A program made the translations under genes and the position numbers. A stretch of DNA of 63,274 nt, the filler included, from Reticulomyxa filosa (taxonomy: Eukaryota; Protista; Foraminifera): assembly GCA_000512085.1 (NCBI GenBank). It is 26 parts of 26 records of this genome, joined end to end, with 100 filler letters (N's around TTAATTAATTAA, not from the genome) between each part and the next. Parts side by side here need not be neighbours in the genome. Positions count along the whole stretch, not along the records: positions 43,342 to 45,686 come from ASPP01017186.1; positions 45,787 to 49,493 come from ASPP01010616.1; 24 more parts are not named here. One strand, 5' to 3'. This document shows positions 2,082 to 49,418 of this stretch, in pieces; within the stretch, counting starts at the first letter, position 1, and the number at the start of each line of letters is the position of its first letter. Under the pieces are notes generated by a model, which was not told the DNA's origin, searched no databases, and was given only the letters and a program-made list of their open reading frames with translations.

Positions 2082-3570
2082 ACAAATACAATCCAGCTGT
2101 ACAATGTTTGAATGTAGAAGATGTTTAATTGTTTTTTGAAGCAGTTCCTTCAGGTGAAGATTGTTTGAAAGTGAAGTGAGTGTGAGAATATTAGGAAAAG
2201 CATAAATTTTCATTGATTTATTTTCATTTAGTGAAAGAAAGTGCATTGATTTTTTATAGAATCAAGCAATTTGTTTTCTTTTCCAATAGCACTAACAATT
2301 GAATATTTCATTTATAGAATAATTAAATCAGAAGAACTTCATACACTTTTCAAATACGACAATAAAATAATGAATTGATGATAAAAATATTGAGTCTCTG
2401 CATAAAGCTTGTTAAAGATATCATCAGCACAAAATTACATTTTTAAATAAACATCTAATGTCGTTGGTAATCTTGCTAATAATTTATTCAACCAACTATA
2501 AAAATTTGTCAAAATGTTTAATCTTGACATTTCTGATTTCAGTAATATATTGCATTTCAGTCTTCCTGCTTCCTATTTTGATGGTTTCAAAGTGCATTCC
2601 ATCCTTGCTATCTTTGCAACTATAATATTACTCTTTCTACTGTCAATTCATATTATATACATTCTGGAAATGCATTGGATACACACAAAGCGTTGCAAAG
2701 CTTTTTTAATAAAAATAATGATAATAAAACTGTAGTTTCTGAACGTTTGAGACGTTCGGGGCTATCCCATCAGATAATCAATGTCATTTTTTGATCCATT
2801 TCATACAACGGTTGTGATCTCGCTATTTGTTTCTTTACAAATTTGATCAATGTTTGTCTTGTTTTTTATGTTTTTTGCATTTGCATTTGTGGCCTTGTTA
2901 TATTCGCTTACGTCTTTGCTGTGCCAACGCTACAATATCCCGCTTATAATAATACTTAAATTATCACGGTTTGTGTAATTTAAGTATAACTTATGAAAAA
3001 TTATTTACAATTTATATAACGAATTTAATTTAAATACATTTCAATGCATCAATCGTAGCACTTTTCAACTGAAGAAAACTGGACATCTTATTGTTGAAAA
3101 AAAAAGGGCAAATGCGTACATGACAGATATTGCCTCGTGTTGTGTATGTGACTTTTTAAGGTTAACATAGGAAAAAGAGGCAAAATTGGCATGAGGCAAG
3201 GATAGCAAAAAAGAAGTCTGCTGTTTGAACTTTTTCATAAAGGAAAAGAACCTCCCAGGGCAGATACCCTACTCCGCCAGCTTAGAATAGCATTGATGAA
3301 ACATTAAACTGTAAACCAAAAAAATATTTTAATTTCAACATAAAAATAAAATATGCAACTGTCAATGCTGTTCTCACTCTGCTTTTTTCTAACAAAAATA
3401 TACTCCAAAAGCTTGATAAAAAATTGGAGTGGAGCATTCTCTTGAAAAAAAATGATTTATAATTTTAATTTTAAAAAAATTTTACCTTTTTGGAAATTGA
3501 AATTAAAACAAAAAGTTTCACTTCAACTTGAGGGGAAAAAAAAGGAGAAAGAAAAAAAACAGAGTTTACC

Positions 3571-4358
3571 ATGTCAATATTGCAATCAGAAAAAAAGAAA
3601 CAAGCTTAAAAGCTTTGTCACTCGATGGCTGTTATGACAAAAATTGGGTGGCTGCTTCGAATAAACAAAGCACGCTAAGACCTCTACAATGTCTATTATG
3701 TGGCCAAGTTGCAAACAATGCAATGGAATTGACTTGCGATGAGCACGATGATTACAAAGATACAGTGATAGTTGGTGAACAATGTCTGATAAAATATTTG
3801 AAAGAGAATAATGATCAATGTCCTATCGGAGAACATGGCACTTGCAAACACACGAAAGGGAGAACTGCAAGGAATTTTGTTTGTGAATTAAAAGTGATTT
3901 GTCCAAGACAATTTATGAAACACTTCAATCAAAGAGAAGAAAATGAAGCAAAAGAAGGTGACACACCTATGGAAGATAGCTGTGCATTTAAGGGAAAGAT
4001 TAATGAAGTGAAAGAACATTTGGAAAATACATGTTCTTTGAAAACTTTGGAGTGTATATTTAAGAAATTTGGATGTAATGAAAGCTTATATGGTTCGAAT
4101 TTTGAAGAGCACATGGAATTGCAAATGAAGAGGCATTTGGATTTGTTGTTGGGTTGCATTTCCGATCGAACTGTAACACTTGCATTAGAATTTTTTTGTT
4201 TATTGATTTTATATTTTAAAAAAAAAACAAAAAACAAGTGTATTGCATAAAAATGGAATATTTAGGAAGAAATAGAACAATCAAAATTGAAAATGAAAGA
4301 ACAAGAAGATGAAATTCAATTGTCGAAATTGGATAGTGAAAACAAAAATATACAAATT
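3571..4358 (+). CDS. Atypical RING + TRAF-type zinc finger protein, N-terminal part (3' truncated)
   Basis: CLLCGQV..CDEH..GEQCL..CPIGEHGTC followed by CPRQF..CAFKGKINEVKEHLENTC..CIFKKFGC..HM..HL. Coiled-coil exon at about 4266-4358. The ATG at 3571 needs a 1-nt correction in an A run. Confidence 0.8.
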
Positions 4359-4544
4359 NNNNNNNNNNNNNNNNNNNNNNNNNNNNNNNNNNNNNNNNNN
4401 NNTTAATTAATTAANNNNNNNNNNNNNNNNNNNNNNNNNNNNNNNNNNNNNNNNNNNNTGTCAAACATGAAGATATTATATATCTATGTTAAATAATTTA
4501 CAATGTTTTGATTGACATTTAAAAAAAGAAAGAGTAAATGAACT

Positions 4545-4650
4545 AACATAATTGACAATAAATTTGTCAAAATCTTTTATCCACCCTAATTTGATTTTCA
4601 ATATTCGAATCCAATGTTGTATGATTACTTGAACCTTTTCTTCTTTAGAC
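4545..4650 (-). pseudogene. N-terminal leader exon of the expanded WD40 family
   Basis: VQVIIQHWIRILKIKLGWIKDFDKFIVNY, homologous to 7055-7135 and 13785-13815. Confidence 0.6.
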
Positions 4651-5797
4651 TGTTTGAATCACAATTTACATACTATATAAACAAAACACTAAAAAAGCAA
4701 TAGATTTTCTGATAGCTTGTAATAAAGCTTACCAACGCTAGTTGTGTTGAATTTTGCTTCTTATTGCTTAGAGTTGTCATTTTTTTTTAAGGTCGTTTTT
4801 GATGATGTAAAATGGAAGATATTGAACTTTTTTCTTCTCAAGAGCAGTCAAAGGGGTTTTCAAAAATATTTTTGGTGACATGAAAAATGGATTTTAACAA
4901 TACATGTTATTTTCTTTTGCAATGAAGACAAGAATTAAAAAAAACTTGTCCAAAACTGAGTGAGAGTATGCAAGGTTTTTTTAAAAGATTTTCAACAAAA
5001 TCTTTGAAAATAGTTTTCAATTTTTTTGTAGTTTAAAGAATGTTTGAAAACAAAAAAGGAACTTCGATGTTGAAACAAAAGGTGTAATTTAACACTTTTT
5101 TAACTTTAAATGTATTTATGCCTTGTTTTTAAATTGACTATTGCTTTGCTAATCTGGAAGAGTAAAATTTAATATTCATGAATTACTTTGAAATACATGC
5201 CATAATATCCAAAAAAATTATAAGGTCTAAACAGTTAACGCAAAGGAAATTTTTAAAATGATTCCTCATGCACGTTAAGTCAACTGTTGTTGTTTTTCAA
5301 TTAATATGTTAACTTTATCTCATAATTTGAGTTTAGTTTCTCAATTCTATAATGGCCAGTAGCAAAGGCTATGTTATATTTTATTTAAGCTTTCTAAAAA
5401 GTTATAAATATTAATCTTTGATTAAAAATTTATTTGTTAAAAAAAATCTTTATAAAAATATTCATAACATATTTATTAAATAATTTATTGTTGCCTTTTT
5501 TTTATTCATTTTTTGATAAATAATTCCTAAAGATACAGTCAAAAAATTGTAAATGATATATTTGATTATGTATTGCCAAAGACAATCTTGGTTACTTTTT
5601 TGAAACATTGAAAAAAAAATTAGAAAAAATTATCTATTCTCTTTTATAATTCATCAAAGTGATATATCATATTATCAATTCACATGAAGACTAAAGTGCG
5701 TAATATGATATTGTTCACTGTTGGTAATGATTTTTTTATTTATTATTTATTTTGATGAAACAAATAAATCGTATTGTATAAAGCTGACTGACAACTA

Positions 5798-5866
5798 CAG
5801 TAGAATCCAAATTAAAGTTGATACCTAAAACGGCACCTTATAGAGATTATTGATTTTCTTCATGAA
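5798..5866 (+). mobile_element. Diverged half-copy of the TA-flanked foldback MITE (see 52251-52378); the contig ends at the hairpin centre
   Basis: TA|CAGTAG...CCTAAAACG...ATTGATTTTCTTCATGAA aligns by eye with the left arm and loop of 52251-52320. Confidence 0.55.
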
Positions 5867-6329
5867 NNNNNNNNNNNNNNNNNNNNNNNNNNNNNNNNNN
5901 NNNNNNNNNNTTAATTAATTAANNNNNNNNNNNNNNNNNNNNNNNNNNNNNNNNNNNNNNNNNNNNTTTTTTTACCGAAATGCATTTTGGCGAATAAAAT
6001 GGTCAAAAATGCATATTCTTCAAACTATAACCACTGACGATAAAAAAAGCAAAAAAAACTTAATTTTTAAAAAAGAAATAGCCCCCTTGAACATAGTTTG
6101 TTTCGTTTTAAAGAATTGATGTTTTATGCTTGAAAACAGATATATATGTTTAAGAAAAGACAATCACATAAGGGAAATCAAATTGTTGTCTTGAATAAAA
6201 ACTAGTTTTAGTCACATCCCCAAATTTGAGTCATACCTTTAGAAGAACCTGACACAAATTGACTTCTATCTGACAAAATATCTATACACGACACTATGTT
6301 GTTAACTTCTATTTTTTATTTTTAATTAC

Positions 6330-45070: not shown

Positions 45071-45799
45071 TTTTCCAAACATTTTCTTTATCACATAGTC
45101 TCTATCTTTTACGAATCACACTGTATAATACTTATTTCACAAAGAATATCTTGTCAGTAAAATTTTTGTAATTTCTCGAGTATATTAGTCACACTCACAC
45201 AACCGTATACTTGGACTAACTTTTGATAACTGCAGCATCATGAGAACTAGTAGAAGAGAATTTAGTAGGTACTTTCAGTAACATGATCACCAACGAGGTC
45301 AAATTTTCCATATTCAGTTAGACTGCGACATTGGGTTTTTTTTTTCAAAGAAAGGAAGAAAAAAATTCAACTTCCTTTAGATGAAAAAAAATAATAATGG
45401 TTTGGTAAGTATTGAATACTTACATGATTGATTTTTTTTAATAATTGTATTATGGGCAACAAAAATTTGTTCCACTTGTATTTATCATTTATTATATTTT
45501 TGTAAATAATGTGTACTATATTTACACTTTTTAAATAAAATTTATATATAATATGTTCAAAATTTTTCTTTAAGTTGTCCAATGAAAAATGAAGATGGAT
45601 GAAAGACAAAAGGTAAGTCACTTTTTAATATAAGAATCTTGTGTGAAATCAATGAAATTTGAAAATAAATTTTATAGCTTAACAAANNNNNNNNNNNNNN
45701 NNNNNNNNNNNNNNNNNNNNNNNNNNNNNNTTAATTAATTAANNNNNNNNNNNNNNNNNNNNNNNNNNNNNNNNNNNNNNNNNNNNTTTTTTTTTTTTT

Positions 45800-45833
<34 letters not shown>

Positions 45834-45859
45834 CATAAAATGTGAGATAAACATAACAC

Positions 45860-48800
45860 ATGATATTAGTCCATCCATTTTGAAGCAACATTTGAAACAA
45901 CGACATCAAAGAGTTGCCCATATCGTCAAAGTTAGCATCTGAACCTCCGTCGTATACTTCGGGCAAAACAATCGAGGACTTGCCTGCAAACAAAGTAGTC
46001 CCTAGCCTTGCAAAGCAAAAGATGGTGATAGCAATGAAGACCACAAACCACCCAAATTTGGGGACAATATCGTATAATGAGGCGAGTACAATCCGAATAC
46101 TTGGCAGTACGGTGAACATTCGCATTAATGACACCTGCAAAAATATTATCACCGATCGATATCGTCCAAACACCAGTGATAGCACGATTCCAATCAATGC
46201 ACCAATAAACAAAATCGCCTCCAGTCGATTGATCAAGATCCATTCTTTACGATCAAACTTGGACCTTTTTTTTTTTTTTTTTTTTTGCTATTTTTTATTA
46301 TAATGTTAACATACATCAAATAATATTTTTATTTTACAGATTCGTGTCATACCAAAAAGGTACTGCTTTCAAATGTCTTCCTTGCTTTTCCATAATTTTC
46401 CATTTCAGATTATCATAGCTTGGATCATCAGTGTCCAGTTTCTGTTCTTTCAGCCATTTTGCAACTGCATGTTGTATCAACGGAGGATCAGGGAGGGCTG
46501 TTCAAGTGGATTATTAATGTTATGTATTATCAATTTTTTTTTTTTTTTTTAAACAAAGATGTGACATTGTTTATCTCAATTCATTGTTCTTTTTTCGTTG
46601 TAAAGAATTGCAAAAACAAACCAATCAAGTCTAAAAAGCGTCGAAAACCAAATGCAAACCAACGGAGAAGGATCTCTGCTAAATTGAATCCAAAGCAAAA
46701 CCACAATGTCGTTTCCACCGTTTTGCCAGAAATCCCACCAAACCCAGTTATGCATGCAGAGATTATTGCAGGGGCTACTCCCAATGTAAGTACCCAATGA
46801 TGATACCGTTCATGTCGAAATACTATTTTTTTTTTTCCTTCTTTGCAATCAAAAAAAAAAAAAGAAAAATTTAAATATACGTATATATTGCAACATAACG
46901 CCGTGTCTCCAGCCATGGTTGAATTTGGTATCTGTTGGATGGACGATAAGCAATAGTAGTGGATGGTTGTGCATCTCCATAAGTGTCTTTGAATTGTTTC
47001 ATAGTAATTGGGAATGTGTCTGCGTTTGAGCGATCCCAAATTTCCTTTATTTTATTTGTTTATTTGTTTGTGAGTGATTTTATTTATAAATCCCAAAAAA
47101 AAAAAAAATAAAAAAAAAAAATGGACAAATCAATATTTTTTCACAAAACCTTTTCGGATAAAAAGTGACACCAACGAACAAGATTGTACATTTCTTTTTT
47201 GAAAATTTTTTTATCGCCATTGGTGTCAATCATAAGAAAGGTGGCCTCCAAGGCTTCATTTTTCTGAGTTTCCATTTTTTCTTCATAAAACTCTCGACTT
47301 TGTCCAAACGACTCCTGAAAGCGATTGATGACAATTGGGATCAAGACAAACAGACCAATGACCACCAGTGTCATCGAATACAATAAGATTTCGAGCGTGG
47401 GTCTCCCACTTTTTTCGCCATAGATTAGATCCGGATAGTTTTCACCAGTTGTCACAAATGCAAAGCTTGTCAACAGCGCAGGTGCAAGTTCCACAAAATT
47501 GTTGGTCAATTTATCGGCATTGATTGCTTTCCGAAGCAACGCAACACCTTTATATATATGTTATGTGTATATATATACATACATATATATATATATTTTT
47601 TTTTTTTTAAAAAAAAAAAGAAATGAAAATTTATGATTTTGGAATTGTGAAGGAAAGTATGGAATGCAAAAAAAAAAAAAAAAGAGTAGTAACATACCCA
47701 CACAAGCAGCAAATAACACAACGCAAAACCAAACCAAAAGTACGTCCCTCGCTTTGAAGATAGCCTTTGCAAAATCTTGAACGAATTGATACAGCTGATC
47801 GACTCGAATGATCAGCAGCAGTCCTTCCAAGGGGACATACGAACTCAGTCTCAATCCACTGGTTAGTGCACACGCGCAGTCGGCGGCAAAGAAAATCAGC
47901 AATGATAAGTATACTGCCAAGCGCTCCCACTCTGGGAAGTTGTACCATTGACAAGTGCATCGCTGACATCGTAGGGTCGCCATAGGGGTCTTTGGCAATA
48001 ACACGACCACGATTACTTGGATAATGATATCGGCCCATAAAAACGCCAACAGTGCACTTCTCGTCCACCACACCCAGGGGGCGTCCCAAGCGCCTGTGAC
48101 CAAGAACGCCAACATGGCTGTCTTGACGGCCATGTTAAAGTACTCTTTGAGCGAGAATAAGTCCAACTCCTTCACACAAAAGATCTGTCCCATTTGAATG
48201 TGCACCTCGCAATCCTCCACTATCGAACGCGTATTATACCTTTCCTTGGCTCGCAGAAATAGCACTGCACAACGTCCGAAATACTCGTTCACGCTATCCA
48301 CTGCAATGGGGCCACGATGTCTCTTTCGTATTCGAATCCATTCTGTCGTCATCGCACCTGAAGTTGTACATATACGTATACACATACACATACGTATAAT
48401 GACAAAAGTGCTTTGGACATACACATTATATATATATATATATATATAATGTGTATGTCCAAAGCAGTTTTTGATATCAAAACTTCGAATGGTTTCAAAT
48501 TTAACATTTCGATTAGCAGATTCGTCATCCATGAAAGACTCTTTTGTGGGTTCCGTTTGTTGTTCTTTTTGCTGTTGAGTGATTTGTATCAACAGCATTC
48601 GCAGTCCGACGGGTAGTCCCAACGCGAATATCAAAGCCGCAATTGCGCCCAGAGAGATCTCCAACCCAGCTGTTGGCACTTGCAACAATCCCACTGTCAT
48701 CGTGAGCAAGCAGGCCAAAGCGATGACAAAGCCCAGCTGTTCCACGGTGACCGGTTGTTCTTTCAGCATTTCCAGCACGTATACGAAGATGATGATGACA

Positions 48801-49418
48801 ATGGCATTAATGAAGAAGGTCATCACGGTATCGTCTCGAACGGGATTGGATAACTCGTCAACGTCCACAGATGTGACAATGGTCCAATCTAAAAAGCCTT
48901 TGCTTGACAAACGTCCTGCAACGACCCAAGGATATGATAGAGGCACGTGGATGCGACGAGGTGCTCCGTTTTTGTTCAATCGATCCAGTCCATGCACCGA
49001 TATCACCTCCTTTGAAATCACAGCTATTTCCTTGTTGCTATGATTGACCGCTGCCAAACTTGTGTACACTTTTGATGAAGAGAACGACTCCGTTATCGAC
49101 TGCGGGCAGTCCTGAGACTGCTCTGTCTCCTCCAATGCACCTCCGACGGACGTTGCCGTCAAATAGTTGGGCGACTGCGTTTCAAAAATCCATGAATATA
49201 TCGTATTGTTCTTCTTCAAGCGAGAATCCAACTCAGAGGTTAAGATCAAATCATAGCTTAAATCCTTTTTTTTTGTTTGTTTGTTTGTCCATAAACACAT
49301 AAAGATACATTACATAATATATATATATATATATGTAATGTAGACTAACACTAAAGTCGTAATCCACATTGAATATTGTAAACAATGTTCCGTTACTATT
49401 TTGAATGGCTGCGGAGGC
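45860..49418 (-). CDS. Two-pore channel (TPC)-like cation channel with N-terminal Cache-like domain and 3 extra TM helices; multi-exon, truncated at both ends
   Basis: Domain I pore FAFVTTGENYPDLIY plus S6. Inter-domain EF-hand FLMIDTNGDKKIFKKE. Domain II NFDDMGNSLMSLFQMLLQNGWTNIM. TPC-like pre-S1 CAVLFLRAKERYNTRSI. Upstream Cache-like motifs NSNGTLFTIFNVDYDFS, WIFET..YLTATS and GFLDWTIVTSV. Confidence 0.8.
48409..48466. repeat. Perfect palindrome centred on (TA)n, in a probable intron
   Basis: TGCTTTGGACATACACATTA-(TA)n-TAATGTGTATGTCCAAAGCA. Confidence 0.9.

Follow-up and report, generated by a model that had tools for sequence, protein, structure and literature searches.

Among the extracellular sensors of bacteria, Cache domains are the most common. 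Receptors with the double form of this domain (dCache) signal as dimers via the helix that leaves the membrane-proximal module, and channels built of two repeats form dimeric pores. Two-pore channels (TPCs) have a short cytosolic N-terminus and, to our knowledge, no ectodomain. In two surveys of Cache domains, no pore-forming channel appears among the outputs, and the category "ion channel" refers to the alpha2delta subunit (PMC4822843). Gumerov et al. defined the amino-acid-binding motif of dCache_1 (dCache_1AA) as Y-x4-R-x-W-Y, then Y-x(27-34)-D, and all of the eukaryotic dCache_1 proteins found in that study carry a VWA insertion (PMC8915833). In this study, we focused on RFI_14613, a gene of the foraminiferan Reticulomyxa filosa. 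The window, which is the whole stretch of DNA analyzed (63,274 nucleotides), joins parts of 26 records of this genome, and the feature studied is its ASPP01010616.1 part, a whole 3,707-bp contig (positions 45787-49493). We consider it likely that RFI_14613 is the middle of one gene that joins a double-Cache (dCache_1-like) sensor, anchoring helices and a Cav-like two-repeat channel, with the sensor on the extracellular or luminal side.

From N- to C-terminus, the protein would consist of a dCache_1-like sensor anchored by one to three helices (RFI_14613 has three), a cytosolic linker rich in charged residues, a Cav-like repeat I of six transmembrane (TM) helices (6-TM), an EF-hand linker and a second 6-TM repeat. 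We demonstrated the order of these parts, their continuity in one reading frame or transcript in relatives and a predicted PAS/PDC-like fold of the sensor. A search of the region returned only one protein, RFI_14613 itself (hypothetical protein, 669 aa, R. filosa), which has 100% identity to the open reading frame (ORF) at 47561-49300 on the minus strand. This frame had been described as stop-free in an earlier, first-pass annotation of the window, and it does run for 579 aa without a stop.

We modelled eight exons on the minus strand and checked them by script: A (49418-49350), B (49264-48484), C (48357-47698), D (47547-47150), E (47044-46900), F (46822-46622), G (46497-46353) and H (46264-45858). 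Every intron of this model has GT-AG ends, GC content is 16-27% in introns against 38-49% in exons, and the model frame holds 935 codons with 0 stops across the eight exons. The concatenated exons served for this stop count only; all searches were done exon by exon. The homopolymer and microsatellite runs of the contig are all intronic, bar two trivial two-copy matches, and Rfam gave no match on either strand. The splicing model of RFI_14613 rests on the sequence and on comparison with relatives. The gene is incomplete at both contig ends, with intron sequence 5' of exon A and a GT donor after exon H.

Exon A (23 codons) is absent from the ORF and had been proposed in the first-pass annotation as an in-phase splice. 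Its translation agrees with the one given there, and it is flanked by AG and GT, joins in phase 0 to 49264 and encodes the last beta-strands of the membrane-distal Cache module. In the R. filosa paralogue RFI_39045 (protein P0004, locus L004), the equivalent place is occupied by an exon of the same length, 23 codons, with an AG acceptor and a GT donor, and the following exon of the paralogue begins past a poly-A...AG at the equivalent residue. In a tblastn search, exon A aligned with P0004 and with P0012, a full-length relative from the Tara metagenome, to the strands ahead of a conserved S-W-I-F-E block (E 0.049 for RFI_39045 in a 3.7-kb database). By these comparisons, exon A is a genuine 69-nt exon whose size and both boundaries are conserved in the paralogue. 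The position of intron 1 (49265-49349; 85 nt, GT..AG, GC 20%, with TA and TTTG repeats) is also conserved there. Exon B begins with a membrane-proximal PAS/PDC-like module of the Cache-like ectodomain (residues 1-145, 48830-49264), which contains two N-x-S/T sites. The three hydrophobic helices recognized earlier were recovered in a Kyte-Doolittle scan in the region 48587-48829, at residues 146-164 (48773-48829), 178-196 (48677-48733) and 208-226 (48587-48643), and translation of the end of exon B (48484-48586) gave the expected charged linker, rich in Q, E and K.

Intron 2 (48358-48483; 126 nt, in frame, with TACACA and TA repeats) separates this linker from the channel. It contains a near-perfect 68-nt palindrome (48404-48471) with 34-nt arms and no spacer, centred on (TA)11. 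The stretch 48358-48483 falls in a gap of the alignment to P0004 and has GT..AG ends, a matching phase and a GC content of 27%; on this evidence it is most likely an in-frame intron rather than coding sequence. The public model of RFI_14613 (47141-49300, P0001) starts at an ATG within intron 1, reads through intron 2 and stops within intron 4, so that exon A and the whole of repeat II are missing from it. The public entry, named as a hypothetical or EF-hand protein, shows Ion_trans only and ends before repeat II. RFI_14613 is thus already public as an uncharacterised, mis-modelled entry, the annotation of which hides the architecture.

The fusion of sensor and channel recurs in at least 10 other proteins, from R. 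filosa paralogues, Nonionella stella, a Tara metagenome and further uncharacterised metagenome sources. The HMMER scan with exon B against 1.84 billion representatives returned 10 rows, comprising RFI_14613 itself, 7 real relatives and 2 matches regarded as spurious. P0012, a longer member of the P0007 cluster, raises the number of real relatives to 8 (three R. filosa paralogues, four ENA/JGI metagenome proteins and P0012). A single Tara sample yielded three of these proteins (P0006, P0007 and P0012). Later searches of EukProt added P0013 and P0014 from Nonionella stella and P0015 from Bolivina argentea. Pfam places Ion_trans after the ectodomain in P0004, P0006, P0012 and P0013, and repeat I was recognized by reading the sequence in P0005, P0008 and P0010; P0014 and P0015 are ectodomain-only fragments. 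P0012 is a single ORF of 1,611 aa in the order TM, ectodomain, TM, Ion_trans, EF-hand, Ion_trans, and N. stella P0013 has the same order, so that the architecture sought among foraminifera was found in a second genus. Both P0012 and P0006 are uninterrupted ORFs. The two foraminiferal sets of EukProt are, we presume, transcriptomes; if so, P0013 represents the fusion on one transcript.

These relatives bear on whether the two halves belong together at all. The contig is short and the junction at 48358-48483 holds a low-complexity palindrome, as would suit an artefact of assembly or annotation in which sensor and channel belong to separate adjacent genes, or to different loci that were wrongly joined at the TA palindrome. 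Such an artefact is scarcely credible, given that the order is repeated on an independent 10.3-kb R. filosa contig (P0004/L004), in the intron-free Tara ORFs and in the N. stella EukProt entry, and that the 126-nt stretch itself has GT..AG ends, matching phase and intron-like GC. Because the fusion recurs in the relatives, sequence comparison makes a misjoin at the palindrome or a pair of adjacent genes very unlikely. The earlier proposal of one gene with sensor and channel therefore stands as to the order of its parts and needs correction at 48358-48483, which had been taken as coding and is likely an intron. The Kyte-Doolittle profiles gave three helices between sensor and S1 in RFI_14613 and RFI_39045 (P0004) and one in the other relatives. 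The count is always odd, as the first-pass annotation had supposed, and therefore the sensor would lie outside and the channel N-terminus inside.

The ectodomain of the relatives comprises about 400 aa flanked by a TM helix on each side, and N-x-S/T sites are 2-5 times denser within it than elsewhere. Of the ectodomain of RFI_14613, the window covers the proximal module in full and no more than the final strands of the distal one; the Cache-like part seen here is the C-terminal third of a larger ectodomain, the 5' exons of which lie off the contig. Evidence for a Cache identity came from remote matches and from structure prediction. A Cache-clan family was the top Pfam match, at sub-threshold scores, in four different sequences at the equivalent place: P0012 (dCache_1, 1.7e-4), P0015 (MCP-like_PDC_1, 4.2e-4, and dCache_1, 7e-3), the first ectodomain of P0013 (MCP-like_PDC_1, 2.1e-4) and the ORF upstream of P0012 on Tara contig L001 (MCP-like_PDC_1, 8e-4). 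The scores in the relatives were 15.6-21.7 bits for dCache_1 (PF02743), against a cutoff of 45, and 19-22 for MCP-like_PDC_1, against 27. By language-model features, the named ESM Atlas neighbours of exon B residues 1-150 all belong to the Cache clan (0.86-0.89, a lead only). The whole P0012 ectodomain reached 0.93-0.97, with 12 matches in the dCache_1-only set and other Cache-clan sets beside it, on a scale where shuffled proteins reach 0.95 about 1 time in 100.

The AlphaFold2 model of exon B residues 1-180, built from an 11-sequence alignment, had a mean predicted local distance difference test (pLDDT) score of 73.5. It begins with a helix, continues as a PAS-like sheet of five strands into which another helix is inserted, and ends in a long helix that enters the membrane (H-E-E-E-E-H-E-E-E-H(TM)), in agreement with the Cache/PAS-like fold that had been expected. 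The first hydrophobic helix is the continuous helix leaving the PDC module. In an exhaustive alignment to PDB representatives, the CzcS periplasmic sensor ranked first (Z 7.6), followed by residues 226-328 of the PctD dCache domain (Z 7.2, 101 residues, root-mean-square deviation 2.9), which we read as the membrane-proximal half of that domain. PAS and LOV domains ranked after PctD, and an alpha2delta chain scored Z 6.1. A shape search of the ESM Atlas with the same model found bacterial transmembrane sensors, with Cache-clan proteins in 6 of the 10 nearest rows (5 of them dCache_1; TM-score 0.51-0.53). For the whole P0012 ectodomain (pLDDT 47.5), the PctD dCache domain was the sole match above Z 8 (Z 9.2). 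In the models, the portion within the window is thus a predicted proximal PAS/PDC-like module that ends in a membrane-entering helix, as in the definition of dCache_1, at moderate Z values.

The family also retains the amino-acid motif in several members. We counted 5 occurrences of the strict form Y-x4-R-x-W-Y among the relatives, where 0.015 would be expected. The whole motif, with a Tyr and then an Asp 29-32 residues on, is present in P0012, P0013, P0014 and P0015, and Y-x4-R-x-W-Y is found in the first ectodomains of P0013 and of Tara contig L001. In R. filosa, it lies in unannotated exons upstream of the paralogue RFI_39045 (L004 808-1302). The window has the final Asp only, placed in exon A by alignment. 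In the channel-proximal ectodomain, the two halves of the motif are separated by some 85 inserted residues, among them conserved Cys.

Several results weigh against this reading of the gene. The exons of the window gave no Cache hit in Pfam, each searched singly, even at E 1, and no Pfam Cache family reached its gathering score in any family member. The family profiles A1 and A2 matched no Cache chain among PDB sequences and returned chance-level rows only. Foldseek found no PDB match at E <= 0.001 (best 0.067) and listed PAS, LOV and GAF chains; the Z values of 7.2-9.2 lie in or just above the range common for the alignment tool, with PAS, LOV and Roadblock chains nearly equal. The distal module of P0012 was modelled at pLDDT < 50. 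The ligand pocket of RFI_14613 lies off the contig, and one R. filosa paralogue, P0008, has the motif in degenerate form.

It might be asked whether the ectodomain is a lineage-specific PAS-like domain that resembles bacterial Cache through a common fold and not through homology. Every sequence-model match is sub-threshold, and the Z values of PAS, LOV, GAF and Roadblock chains differ from those of the Cache chains by only 1-2 units, as this explanation would predict. However, it leaves aside the recurrence of the Cache clan as the top Pfam match at an equivalent place in four sequences, the feature-search scores of 0.96-0.97 for dCache_1 clusters, a motif spacing as defined for dCache_1AA and a TM-ectodomain-TM layout as in bacterial receptors. 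We regard a PAS-like domain unrelated to Cache as improbable. A Cache origin of the ectodomain family is very likely on the combined grounds of remote homology and predicted fold. The Cache-like N-terminus of the first-pass annotation is accordingly retained through the feature neighbours, the fold and the motif of the relatives, while the Pfam thresholds were not reached and only part of the sensor lies in the window. Of the Pfam families it had named for checking, Ion_trans was found in both repeats and EF-hand weakly, and the Cache clan was without match in the window.

The channel half is more readily recognized. Pfam matched Ion_trans in exon D (2e-5) and exon H (5e-13). Exon C encodes the cytosolic linker and S1-S5 of repeat I, of which S2-S5 were visible by hydropathy, and is collinear with P0012, P0006 and P0004. 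Exon D contains the pore loop of repeat I (T-T-G-E-N), S6 and a putative first EF-hand (loop at about 47174-47251), which weakly matched EF-hand_6 after S6 of repeat I at E 0.014 (15.5 bits against a threshold of 25); relatives scored for an EF-hand at the same place in the linker (P0013, 23.3 bits; P0012, 18.2 bits). Exon E covers the rest of the I-II linker past the EF-hand, as judged by frame and splice sites. Exon F encodes S1-S2 of repeat II (tblastn to P0004 3e-14, to P0012 7e-8), and exon G the S2-S3 loop, which was assigned from its splice sites and a weak tblastn match to P0012 (E 0.051). Exon H encodes S3-S5 and the pore helix of repeat II, also seen by hydropathy, with the filter Q-N-G-W, and is followed by its GT donor and the contig end, which cuts the pore loop of repeat II and leaves S6 off the contig.

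Among PDB sequences, the best match of exon H was Cav3 repeat II (3e-11), and P0012 matched Cav3.2 repeat II at 3e-21. Exon D matched the pore-S6 region of Cav1/Cav2 repeat I (7e-5) and AtTPC1 (0.05). No TPC chain was among the listed PDB matches for repeat II of exon H or P0012, and no animal TPC was listed. The HMMER alignment shows a basic residue at 1 of the 4 Cav3 charge positions in S4 of repeat II, where the filter has Asn in place of the Cav Glu; repeat I has a single Arg in S4, and its filter keeps the Glu. The window contains two Ion_trans repeats (exons D and H) in a chain that is cut, and the full-length P0012, P0006, P0004 and P0013 end after repeat II. The protein is thus unlike a four-domain Cav alpha1, as the relatives have two repeats, the S4 charges are mostly lost and the repeat II filter has Asn. 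By sequence, the predicted pore is a Cav-like half-channel with degenerate voltage sensors and is TPC-like in layout only. The arrangement of 6TM, EF-hand and second repeat that had been read as a TPC therefore holds as a layout, with S6 of repeat II off the contig, while the sequence is nearer to Cav alpha1.

In R. filosa, a freshwater species, both paralogues that have the region carry Q-N-G-W as the repeat II filter (45870-45890), and the members from the Tara metagenome and from Nonionella have G-E-G-W or G-E-S-W. This difference in sequence could correspond to a difference in ion selectivity.

If the preferred architecture is correct, the protein would dimerise to form a four-repeat pore beneath a dimeric sensor. 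Since dCache receptors are dimeric and two-repeat channels form dimeric pores, the stoichiometries match. A small molecule would bind the ectodomain, probably an amino acid or a similar compound where Y-x4-R-x-W-Y...Y-x29-D is intact. Binding might then shift the helix by which the proximal module enters the membrane, thereby biasing opening of the pore, with Ca2+ feedback via the EF-hands. Voltage would play little role, because S4 of repeat II keeps 1 of the 4 Cav gating charges and S4 of repeat I one Arg; opening by the ectodomain and by EF-hand Ca2+ is therefore more likely than opening by voltage. We tentatively suggest, as a possibility that is still rather doubtful, that the family is a hitherto unrecognised foraminiferal class of ligand-gated cation channels in which a dimeric dCache_1 sensor of bacterial type, amino-acid-binding where the motif is kept, directly gates a dimeric two-repeat Cav-like pore. 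The fusion would then be a 'Rosetta stone' for an ancient Cache-Cav pairing, which in animals persists in trans as alpha2delta and alpha1.

The main rival to gating by a ligand is a structural or trafficking role in cis. The ectodomain would be Cache-derived and would act like alpha2delta as an auxiliary module, serving in folding, trafficking, surface anchoring or contact with the matrix or test. The animal dCache proteins alpha2delta and CACHD1 mainly modulate Cav trafficking and gating (PMC8915833). The degenerate motif of P0008 and the replacement of the third Tyr by Phe in the RFI_39045 locus would fit such a role, as would the long cytosolic linker and, in R. filosa, the two extra helices between the sensor and S1. 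On the other hand, several marine members retain the complete amino-acid motif, some of them in each of their two tandem ectodomains, and this points to selection on a binding pocket. Most gating charges have also been lost from S4 in both repeats, and the pore therefore needs some other stimulus to open. A purely auxiliary module is in our opinion unlikely, although it deserves more weight than a PAS-like domain outside the Cache family.

Other observations concern the neighbouring loci and the searches. On ASPP01046645.1 (L004), exons homologous to the distal Cache module lie at 808-1302 and 1427-1573, upstream of the annotated start of RFI_39045; they include Y-D-P-R-C-R-P-W-Y and overlap a separately annotated 174-aa gene. 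The RFI_39045 gene model has probably been split in two. On Tara scaffold_2434 (L001), the ORF at 2865-5981 sits 19 nt upstream of P0012 (6001-10836) and encodes a DEP domain and a Cache-like ectodomain with an uninterrupted amino-acid motif. This ORF aligns collinearly with the first 1,000 residues of Nonionella P0013, and some members therefore have two tandem Cache-like ectodomains ahead of the channel. The two Tara ORFs may represent a single gene interrupted by a stop codon or a very short intron. Two rows of the exon B scan, P0003 (Omnitrophota, 5,558 aa) and P0009 (Arundinibacter, 1,788 aa), were regarded as spurious and rejected as relatives. Both are giant repeat proteins with no Pfam sensor domain at the matched places, and each of them matched small portions of exon B in 13-16 short stretches, which are probably summed chance hits to a repeat. 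When homologues were sought by word index with the ectodomain profile, all matches were foraminiferal proteins and none was a bacterial Cache protein. The P0012 ectodomain, compared with plasmids by tblastn to obtain bacterial Cache sequences, matched Spiroplasma rows at chance level only. A locus search with the A3 profile found no relatives in the JGI metagenomes.

The architecture had not been recognized as a described one when the window was first annotated, and our full-text literature searches likewise turned up no publication that connects Cache domains with Ion_trans fusions, TPCs or foraminifera. Seen from the sensor, the family can be regarded as a Cache receptor whose output is new; seen from the pore, it is a voltage-gated-like channel whose input is new. 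If true, a dCache-like sensor free of VWA on a Cav-like half-channel would constitute a new output class for Cache signalling and a new way to gate voltage-gated-like channels, and the fusion possibly represents a novel type of chemically gated channel. It would also provide an independent hint of functional coupling between Cache ectodomains and Cav pores. The family is a testable molecular candidate for chemosensing by foraminiferal pseudopodia, and its intron-free marine genes are directly expressible.

Compared with known systems, the family resembles two-pore channels, especially plant TPC1, in its two 6-TM repeats, the putative EF-hands of the I-II linker and the expected dimeric pore. 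It differs from them in sequence, since AtTPC1 matches exon D only (E 0.05). The likeness to ionotropic glutamate receptors is a functional analogy only: in both, a bacterial-type extracellular small-molecule-binding domain is set on a cation pore. The sensor of those receptors is a periplasmic-binding-protein clamshell and their pore an inverted 2-TM P-loop, both unrelated to the family described here. Bacterial dCache_1 receptors (for example, the Pseudomonas chemoreceptors PctA/PctD and dCache_1 histidine kinases and cyclases) share the order of TM, ectodomain of about 400 aa and TM, together with a PAS/PDC-like proximal module that runs into a membrane helix. They are the best structural neighbours found here, and the relatives of RFI_14613 have their Y-x4-R-x-W-Y...Y-x29-D motif in common with them. 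However, their output is HAMP with a kinase, MCP or cyclase domain, whereas here it is an ion-channel pore, the motif holds a Cys-bearing insertion of about 85 residues and the Pfam thresholds are not reached. Animal Cav alpha1 with alpha2delta or CACHD1 likewise pairs a dCache_1-type ectodomain with a Cav-type pore. The insertion of the foraminiferal family lies at the position of the alpha2delta VWA domain, between the halves of the motif (PMC8915833), and the family gave no Pfam match to VWA. Cav alpha1 has four repeats, in contrast to two here with most of the S4 charges lost and Asn for Glu in the repeat II filter. In animals the ectodomain belongs to a separate subunit, whereas in this family it is fused to the pore in cis.

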